NCBI GenBank assembly: GCA_011109175.1
Contig: RDEW01000025.1
Span: 31,990 to 95,989 of the forward strand
Length of the DNA: 64,000 nucleotides
Direction: 5' to 3'
Source: Dicyema japonicum
Lineage: Eukaryota; Animalia; Dicyemida
Both the position numbers and the translations under genes were made by a program. Shown here in pieces: positions 15,040 to 17,735 of the stretch. The notes below the pieces were generated by a model, which was not told where the DNA came from, made no database searches, and worked only from the letters and a program-made list of their open reading frames with translations. The number at the start of each line of letters is the position of its first letter. The stretch's first letter is position 1.

Positions 15040-16345
15040 AATCATAATTCTTAAATTTTAGCAAAAAGTTTAACCTAGCAGATTTTTCACGAAAATCTCC
15101 GGTTGAATTCCGTGTAAAAAATCCATAAAATCGAAGCTTATCAAACAAATATTAAGAGACCAATGATTATGGGCAGACTCGTAAAGAACAGGGATTAAGG
15201 CATCCAAAAATAGATCAGGGTAGCGATTAATTAAATTTACCATCCATTCTTGGCGTGAAAAACTATGAACCTTCTCTACAATCTGAAATTACAAAACATA
15301 AACTTGAAAACAAATATCCCCATAAAAAGGTGTCCAAAAATTAACAAACTCACACCACAAACCAATCGGCACAAGAGTCACATCTACAATTTTAAATAGA
15401 GAGGCAATTTCGTCAATAATCAGAACCTAAATTACTAAAAACCAAACAAACCCCACTTCTAGAACATTTCTTGGGGAAAATCCTCATCAAATACTCCAAA
15501 ACAACGCTGAATAAACGAGGATCCTTCTCCACAAACTGACGTGTACACAGCGACAGCTTCAATCACACCAAATCAAACCTCAGTGTGAAAGGCGCATAAA
15601 CACCTACTTTTGTGAAGCGGCAGTATAATATTCTTCAGTAAGTTGATATTTTTCTTCCTCAGTGGGAGAATAAACCCATAAATTATGCATTGAAGGAGCA
15701 TCAGGAGCTCCGGCATCCCGTTGAAGGTCTCCCCGTCGTACAGGAACCTGGTTAAGCCAAATTTTACCATAAAATGATGTTCGTAATGTCATCCAGCAGG
15801 TAAGTCCTAGTAGAAACGAACTTAGAGAAGATCTTGTGCAGAATAATCTGCAAGTACTTCCGTTCATTCCAATCCATAGAATCCATCATCAAAATGAGAC
15901 GCTTAGAAAGAGTTTTAAAAAGTTTTGAATTGATGACTGACATGGGCAGATAGAGATCCAGGAATATGAAAAAGTAATCATAAACGAGCTGGTTAGATGA
16001 GACAAAACTACCTCCAGGTGTAACCACGCGGGTCATTTACGCTCTCGGGAAGTTCAATGTCGATTCCATTGAAATACTCACATTTTGGGAGAGTTCGGAT
16101 TATGTTTGATTTGAGCATTTTTAAAGATTCTAAGATGAATTCTATCTCCATTATAGAATGCATATTTTGGGCACAAAAGTCTATGAGTTCCAGAAGAAGA
16201 TGTTCTTTTTTTACCTTTTCTTCTATCATAGTGTTTTTTTAAAATCATAGACGACGGAACATTTCTTGAGTTTAATTACATAACTCTCTTCTTTGTCTGA
16301 CTCTTTCATTTCCATAATGAATTCCTCTTCCTCTATCTTATTCAT
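15040..16345 (-). CDS. PPP2R5: PP2A regulatory B56 (B') subunit with five tiny introns and homopolymer frameshifts
   Basis: ATG is at 16345. Motifs are KLKKCSVVYDF, DP[A]WLHLE|LVYDYF, DWNERKYLQIILHKIFSKF, NGMPELL..L..II.GF.LPL, LPLHK, QFVEKDP and HW. Introns lie at 15989-16011, 15748-15767, 15557-15578, 15427-15451 and 15283-15303. Single-base losses occur in an A7 run (about 16235) and a C3 run (about 16032). The exact C-terminus is uncertain. Confidence 0.88.
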
Positions 16346-16546
16346 TTCTATGGTAGATAAAACTGGTTAATTGGTTGCAAAATAAATATTTGAAATTATA
16401 CCTTTTCTTTTTTAACCACCGGGAGAAAAAATTCAAATTTATGAAAAAATTATTGTTTTCTTAATTCATAGAAAATAAATCTAAATTAATTGAAAATCAT
16501 TTATGTAATGTAGTAAAATAATTAAAATTAATTTAATAAAGATTAT

Positions 16547-17058
16547 GTACAACTCCCTAAAAACATTTCGCATAAATATCCTCATGAGTTATCTGGAGGA
16601 CAAAGACGAAGAATTTGTATTGCAAGTACGTTGGCACTAGAACCTTCTTTTATTGTTTGTGACGAACTAGTAGCCGCCTTCGATGTCTCCGTAAAAGCAT
16701 AAGTGATTAATCTCTTAATTAAACTCTATGAAGTACTTTGATTAACCTATCTCTTTATTTCCTACGATCTAAAGGTGGTGAATTTTATTGCCAAATGAAT
16801 AGCTGTCATGTACCAAGAGCGACTTATAGAAAAAGGAAGTGTAGAGGGATTATTCCATACGTTCAATCATCCTTATACCCAAGCCCTCTTATCGTCAATT
16901 GCTACTACAAACCTTACCCATAAGAAATTATTTTACAAGGTGATATCTCTAGTCTAATGGAACTACTTACAAGATGTCATTTCCACTCTAGATGTTGGAA
17001 AAGACAACAATTTTTAAAACAACAGGGACATTTTTACTGTCATCATTCCGTTCAGTAA
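16547..17058 (+). pseudogene. oppF: Bacterial oligopeptide/dipeptide ABC transporter ATPase (OppF/DppF/AppF-type) C-terminal half, decayed
   Basis: Translation is [56 protein letters not shown]...L*LTYLFISYDLKVVNFIAK*IAVMYQERLIEKG...HPYTQALLSSI...ILQGDI...CHFHSRC...GHFYCH. It contains the signature, Walker B, D-loop, H-loop and the oligo_HPY tail. It has no introns, three substitution stops and at least one 1-nt loss. Confidence 0.9.
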
Positions 17059-17129
17059 TTATCACTCCTTTTTAAGTCGACTATGCCAAATTTAGACACC
17101 AAAAATAACCATAGTATTATTACACTACT

Positions 17130-17735
17130 TGACTTACGTACTTAAATGGAGCGCTTGATAGGTGCACGACTCTATCTAAACCATTTTCCCTCTCCAATAC
17201 CTAATGGCTATAGGAATGGGATGTGTAGCAGACTATGGATGGATTTGTGCCTTTATCCCTTGAGAATCAAGAATCCATTTCCAGGATTAATGAGGTCTAC
17301 CAACAAGTCGTCGTTTCTACCATTGAATATTCCTGCTCCGCCTGGAGATTTGCGATTCACTCTTCGAAAGTGGATCGTTTGAACTCCCTCAGGCGGAAAA
17401 TTATGCATCACGACAGACATCCCCATTGGCGGCCTCGTTTCTGATGAAGCGACGTTGAAGAATGGCAAGAGTTTCCTAAGTTTGTGCAAGGAACTGGGAA
17501 ACCCACTCAAAGAAAAAATGGCCCATGTAGAAAAAATTCGGTCGGTAATAAAAAAGTGCACGCCGATTGAATTCCTTTGCAGAACTAAGGGAAGGCGCTT
17601 CCCGAATGTGGTTGGGTGATCAGAAGACCAGATGAAGAGAGTTTGGATGTTGTTGGAGGCTGGATCACCTAATTAGTTAGTCTGACCTATCTTTCTTGGT
17701 GGTCTAGGGGGTAAATAAATAAATAAAAATAAAAA
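17130..17735 (+). mobile_element. Jockey-like LINE 3' portion with (TAAA)n tail
   Basis: YQQVVVSTIEYSCSAWRFAI is the same family as 36108-36844. It ends ggggtaaataaataaataaaaat. Confidence 0.65.

Follow-up and report, generated by a model that had tools for sequence, protein, structure and literature searches.

Introduction

DNA of endosymbionts is known from animal nuclei, in the form of Wolbachia pseudogenes in insects and nematodes and of Cardinium-related genes in the mealybug Planococcus citri, and most of these insertions are pseudogenised (PMC7050614, PMC5664097). Hosts from which the Cardinium clade has been reported so far are arthropods, nematodes, a marine copepod and freshwater mussels (PMC6387759, PMC9918034). 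Among the genes of these bacteria is oppF, whose product belongs to an ATPase subfamily with an oligo_HPY C-terminal extension that also comprises OppF/DppF of E. coli and Rv1281c/DppD of M. tuberculosis (8z21, 8z1v, 8j5q, 8wd9). In Cardinium and its relatives, oppF is the last gene of an oppABCDF operon, downstream of which lies a tRNA-synthetase gene.

Dicyemids are marine spiralian parasites of about 30 cells. They are extremely reduced, and their germ cells develop within another cell. Dicyema japonicum is a parasite of the octopus. No report of a bacterial symbiont of dicyemids or of a bacterial gene transfer into them was found in the literature searched. The published genome of D. japonicum has a GC content of 36.7%, consists of 49% repeats and harbors many LINE copies (PMC6736024).

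Here, we present a computational analysis of a stretch of 64,000 nt from this genome (contig RDEW01000025.1, positions 31,990 to 95,989), referred to as the window, in which a bacterial OppF/DppF-type ABC ATPase fragment had been proposed from the letters alone. The window has a GC content of 35% and abundant repeats, which agrees with the published genome, as do the 2019 dates of the sequencing runs. The fragment belongs to the same protein family as the OppF proteins of Cardinium hertigii and further Amoebophilaceae and shares their clade motifs (29 protein letters, not shown); it is 54-61% identical to them at the amino acid level and, over 469 nt, 69% identical at the DNA level. Unlike these proteins, it covers only about residues 144-330; its frame is broken by three stops and a frameshift, 12 codons are deleted and the H-loop His has become Tyr. 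In addition, it lacks oppABCD neighbours and is flanked by a eukaryotic B56 gene on one side and by a repeat on the other. The proteins of E. coli and M. tuberculosis share the subfamily and the C-terminal extension with it but are functional, full-length and far more distant than those of the Amoebophilaceae type. With the insertions known from other animals it has in common that DNA from a lineage of intracellular symbionts resides in a host chromosome in pseudogenised form; in contrast to those cases, the host is a dicyemid and a single 0.5-kb fragment is known so far.

Results

Identity of the fragment

Positions 16541-17058 of the window (plus strand) are the C-terminal ~170 residues of an OppF/DppF-type ABC ATPase, about residues 144-330. 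Translation of 16547-16927 in frame 1 yields the motifs named in the first-pass annotation (31 protein letters, not shown, together with HPYTQALL; a longer excerpt of the same reading has 56 letters), and the tail ILQGD..RCHFHSRCWK..GHFYCHH is read in frame 3 from 16927 to 17058. The approximately 170 codons with ABC motifs and an HPYTQALL tail that had been described at this place are reproduced, with the tail in another frame. The features of the locus are as follows.

15413..16345, minus strand: 5' part of the host gene for a PP2A B56 regulatory subunit, divergent; Pfam PF01603 on four ORFs, E 2e-12 to 6e-6
16541..16927, plus strand: OppF-type pseudogene, first frame, from DYVQLPKN through ABC signature, Walker B, D-loop and H-loop to HPYTQALL; corresponds to about residues 144-272 in Cardinium OppF and is 59.7% identical to the C. 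hertigii protein over 129 aa
16589..16603, plus strand: ABC signature LSGGQ, intact (translation and alignment)
16649..16666, plus strand: Walker B FIVCDE, intact (translation and alignment)
16700..16702, plus strand: in-frame stop TAA; Q in 5/5 aligned relatives, no variant in read-derived contigs
16739..16741, plus strand: in-frame stop TGA; G, N or A in relatives
16763..16765, plus strand: H-loop codon TAC (Tyr); catalytic His in relatives (ISHD/IAHD)
16796..16798, plus strand: in-frame stop TGA; Q or H in relatives
16924..16927, plus strand: frameshift from frame 1 to frame 3; about 5 nt lost ('ER' of KKERIIL in relatives), no indel in read-derived contigs
16927..17058, plus strand: OppF tail in the second frame (IILQGD..RCHFHSRCWK..GHFYCHH) up to the TAA stop at 17056-17058; about 12 codons gone after ~17019
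17293..17600 and beyond, plus strand: edge of a very high-copy repeat, recognised by a jump in depth; 235 nt past the stop codon of the fragment

Several searches agree on this assignment. The Pfam model ABC_tran (PF00005) matches with an E-value of 1.7e-7 and 32.4 bits (cut-off 25). The model oligo_HPY (PF08352) matches on two pieces (E 1.5e-5 and 0.074, 25.7 and 13.9 bits), each of which scores below the cut-off of 27.1 because the frameshift splits the domain; the C-terminal extension itself is present, with HPYTQALL and the Cys/His tail aligned in full to relatives. The family markers in the ABC signature and in Walker B are intact, and the top solved-structure matches are ATPases of the OppF/DppF/DppD type. 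In a tblastn search of the whole 64-kb window with Cardinium OppF, the fragment is the sole match (E 1e-45), and with full-length relatives the match spans residue ~144 to the C-terminus. From the tblastn, Pfam and structure matches it follows that the observation is real and far beyond chance, and the proposed prokaryotic, OppF-type nature of the fragment is borne out by all of them together with the motif translation.

The remainder of the gene is not found nearby. Upstream of 16541, there is no similarity to residues 1-143 of three relatives, which comprise the N-terminal half with Walker A and Q-loop. No trace of oppA-D, of the N-terminal half of oppF, of the tRNA-synthetase gene or of 20 other neighbour genes of three relatives was detected in the 64-kb window, and these searches revealed no second remnant of the donor of the fragment there.

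Decay of the reading frame

The state of the gene was read from an alignment of the fragment to five close relatives. Neither an intact reading frame nor the catalytic His of the H-loop is left: there are three stop codons and one frameshift, and His is replaced by Tyr. The frame changes at 16924-16927 because about 5 nt coding for 'ER' are lost, and the alignment reveals an internal deletion of about 12 codons near 17020. Three stops (TAA, TGA, TGA) had been annotated at positions normally occupied by Q, G and R; the stops as well as the Q and G positions are correct, but the third position is Q or H, and not R, in the closest relatives. The frameshift, the deletion and the loss of the H-loop His go beyond the defects annotated earlier. 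That the piece had decayed in place, as suggested there, agrees with this whole set of defects and with the presence of the stops in read-derived contigs. The fragment is a dead pseudogene piece of the OppF family and not a working member of it; it is probably without function.

The substitution pattern was compared with that of C. hertigii. Lineage-specific nucleotide changes number 82 in the fragment vs 23 in C. hertigii, i.e. approximately 3.6-fold more, counted where two outgroups agree. The fragment-specific changes are spread over the codon positions as 34/21/27, a distribution which does not discriminate because Cardinium, conditioned in the same way, shows one that is just as even, so that only the rate asymmetry was used.

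Two other sources of the stop codons were considered and rejected. Alternative codes with TGA as Trp or TAA as Gln do not fit TGA codons where relatives have G and Q/H; nor do tiny introns fit a homology that passes straight through the stops.

Two variations within the fragment were observed in the read-derived contigs described below. Position 16583 differs between two runs of one sample, with T in X3 and C in X1 and in the window, T turning the His of YPHE into Tyr; this looks like a neutral variant segregating in the pooled animals. The segment 16702-16809, in the H-loop part, shows a slight excess of depth (150-200 vs 135 in X3, likewise in X1), for which either an allelic bubble or a diverged further copy in another place could account.

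Physical linkage to host DNA

The fragment is physically continuous with host genes. The evidence of linkage consists of assembled contigs, not of raw long reads. Logan contigs from runs X1 (1532 nt) and X3 (2081 nt), two separate assemblies of one sample which is possibly the source of the genome assembly itself, each extend unbroken over 16000-17398. Both lead from B56 through the fragment into the ~1000-copy repeat as a single unbranched piece with identical stops. A third contig of 261 nt, from run X5, which carries another organism label and comes from another study (2015), covers 16320-16580 with 0 differences and reaches 34 nt past the left junction if this is put at 16547, or 40 nt if it is put at 16541. 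Its source is probably the same dicyemid species within another sample, e.g. host tissue. The proposed junction with eukaryotic DNA is confirmed on both sides by the contigs of X1 and X3 and on the left side by that of X5.

Between the read-derived contigs and the window there are differences at 16029, 16233 and 17280 but none at any stop or at the frameshift, and therefore the defects are not polishing errors. Disappearance of the stops on polishing had been named as an observation that would speak against an integrated relic; they persist in the read-derived contigs. So far, the insertion extends over about 0.52 kb, with its left end at 16541 +/- ten bases and its right end between 17058 and 17292.

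The divergent neighbour on the minus strand is borne out as a B56 gene by PF01603, and with ~196 nt between its start and the fragment the distance of about 200 bp given earlier is accurate. At each of the three differing positions, all of them homopolymer sites, the contigs of X1 and X3 have one extra base (G, T and C, respectively); the low-coverage run X6 has the extra base at 16029 and 16233 too and no coverage at 17280. The window thus contains 1-nt assembly deletions at these sites. Since those at 16029 and 16233 break the B56 frame, the overlapping ORFs are artefacts and not the result of tiny introns. Of the "tiny-intron B56 gene" in the first-pass annotation, the gene stands, and two of its apparent frame breaks are 1-nt assembly errors. 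Within the first exon, the segment 16054-16107 has ~5x the flank depth in three runs and an A>G difference at 16074; it is a short sequence that recurs at other places of the genome or the sample.

On the other side of the fragment, depth rises roughly 1000-fold from 17293. Contig depth in the Logan contigs is flat by construction and carries no local depth; summed over contigs in X3, it goes from 135 in the flank to over 100,000 in the repeat, of which dozens of variant copies are present. Within the window there is no further copy of this repeat, and a Pfam search of its ORFs gave no match. It is probably a 5'-truncated LINE, judging by a motif read by eye that is similar to the C-terminal part of a reverse transcriptase; the ORF 17235-17444 resembles the region just past the reverse-transcriptase domain of LINEs. 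A separate feature of the window is the hexamer CACGTG, which occurs 24 times vs about 6 times expected from base composition and is absent from the fragment and its single-copy flanks (16350-17292).

Phylogenetic position of the donor

Different strategies were applied in the search for the donor. A scan of 185,579 species genomes, one per bacterial or archaeal species, with the 51-aa first piece as query gave at least 80 loci, which were re-scored with the whole read-through of ~171 codons and an X at each break. The best among the loci listed is an Amoebophilaceae metagenome-assembled genome (MAG) with 166 bits, vs at most 149 bits for the other listed loci. An exhaustive search of representatives with the 51-aa piece mostly returned fused double-ATPase proteins, whose scores are inflated because two stretches matched, and was of no help concerning the donor.

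Searches seeded with OppF of the Amoebophilaceae MAG and of Cardinium led to 166 relatives. Among 316 proteins, the top matches of the fragment are Cardinium-group OppF proteins with 186-190 bits and the amino acid identities given above, namely P0274, P0235 (C. hertigii), P0242, P0271 (Cardinium of Tipula) and P0281 (Cardinium of Culicoides). The rest of the Amoebophilaceae-type clade follows with scores only slightly below this group. At the DNA level, the alignment to oppF of C. hertigii is continuous over its 469 nt (E 1e-47), that to the basal MAG P0246 is shorter, and other clade members align in short patches only. The motifs YVQL, RCW, RCWK and ILQGD are found in 70-152 of 154 clade members vs 0-1 of 213 others, and the fragment carries all of them.

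For the trees, 16 of the 80 listed loci, mostly from Chitinophagaceae and other Bacteroidota, were left out as non-orthologous, as they are devoid of the oligo_HPY tail. A careful maximum-likelihood tree of 113 rows places the fragment in a 50-row Amoebophilaceae-type clade (support 99/95) and groups it with four Cardinium-group rows (100/85). In a focused tree of 65 rows it is basal to a 25-row clade which contains every named Cardinium (96/94). A quick tree, unlike the careful ones, put it with the HJW.8 subgroup of Amoebophilaceae. We trust the careful trees over the quick one; the placement nevertheless shows instability. The branch of the fragment is very long, and several alternatives stand unrejected in AU tests: a position outside the clade as a whole (p 0.33 and 0.45), one not within the Cardinium group (p 0.47) and a grouping with Amoebophilus (p 0.27). 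Membership in the Amoebophilaceae-type OppF clade appears well supported by trees, scores and motifs, and the Cardinium lineage is favoured as donor but unproven.

The earlier suggestion of an AT-rich bacterial source, perhaps an endosymbiont, fits the nearest relatives, which are AT-rich intracellular Bacteroidota (Cardinium/Amoebophilaceae). Likewise, protein searches and phylogeny lead to Amoebophilaceae OppF, in agreement with the view that the homologues are prokaryotic and not eukaryotic.

Discussion

The fragment is bacterial in ancestry, it is a pseudogene and it is linked to host DNA. With high confidence, we regard it as a non-functional relic of bacterial DNA in the nuclear genome of the host animal, with the Cardinium lineage as the most probable donor. 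It is a real, decayed insertion from an AT-rich, probably intracellular, bacterium and is presumably old. The donor would have been an Amoebophilaceae-type bacterium, most probably of the Cardinium lineage of obligate intracellular symbionts. Such a bacterium may have lysed within a cell, and a piece of its oppF may have been joined into a germ-line chromosome break by end-joining, landing ~200 bp upstream of B56. For Wolbachia such a course of events is well documented, and the mealybug genome is a reported case with Cardinium-related genes (PMC7050614, PMC5664097). Only the C-terminal half would have survived or ever been inserted, and neutral drift would since have produced the three stops, the frameshift and the 12-codon deletion and removed the H-loop His. 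The further proposal, that the fragment is a fossil dating from a time when Cardinium-type bacteria infected the dicyemid lineage, and the first trace of a bacterial endosymbiont in Dicyemida, is put forward tentatively, with a chance which we place a little short of even.

The same relic may instead stem from a donor that was no symbiont of dicyemids, such as a bacterium of the Amoebophilaceae type that inhabited the octopus kidney or co-resident ciliates or occurred freely in the urine, and whose DNA was taken up and integrated. The AU tests leave the fine placement loose enough for such a source, the clade includes many environmental MAGs and a MAG labelled Bdellovibrionales, and the literature searched yielded no link between dicyemids and endosymbionts. 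However, all named members of the nearest group (Cardinium, Amoebophilus) are obligate intracellular bacteria. In transfers of this kind, germ-line integration is generally observed far more often from intracellular bacteria, which also counts against a non-symbiont donor, and we consider one rather unlikely, though it deserves consideration. A different question is whether the piece has been co-opted, as part of the B56 promoter or 5' UTR or of a non-coding RNA. Its position ~196 nt upstream of the B56 start would allow this, and the X5 contig, which runs at 16320-16580 from the B56 coding start into the fragment, would suit a 5' UTR if X5 were RNA. The longest X5 contig, with 53 kb, suggests DNA, however, and the stops, the indels and the segregating C/T at 16583 all match neutral drift, with no sign of constraint, so that co-option seems improbable.

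An assembly chimera or contamination, in which a piece of a living, co-sequenced bacterium was wrongly joined to host contigs, would be conceivable insofar as samples of dicyemids are obtained by pooling from octopus kidneys and full cleaning of them is impossible (PMC6736024), and assembly indel errors do occur nearby in the window. Against it stand the unbranched contig over both junctions in two separately assembled runs, the bridging of the left junction by X5, a truncated gene whose three stops and frameshift are all in the reads, and the lack of adjoining opp or other donor genes. We give this explanation hardly any credence; junction-spanning contigs, truncation and stops bear out the integration that had been proposed in place of contamination.

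The inserted relic is of an ordinary kind, a transfer from symbiont to host, in an unusual host. Functionally, one dead piece of 0.5 kb carries no evident weight. The relic suggests that the dicyemid lineage encountered a Cardinium-type symbiont and thereby provides a testable lead to a Cardinium-like symbiont that dicyemids may have harbored in the past or may harbor today. If the fragment is indeed the fossil of such an infection, more remnants, or even a living symbiont, may yet be found in the genome and the reads, and the known reach of Cardinium/Amoebophilaceae symbionts would extend to dicyemids.
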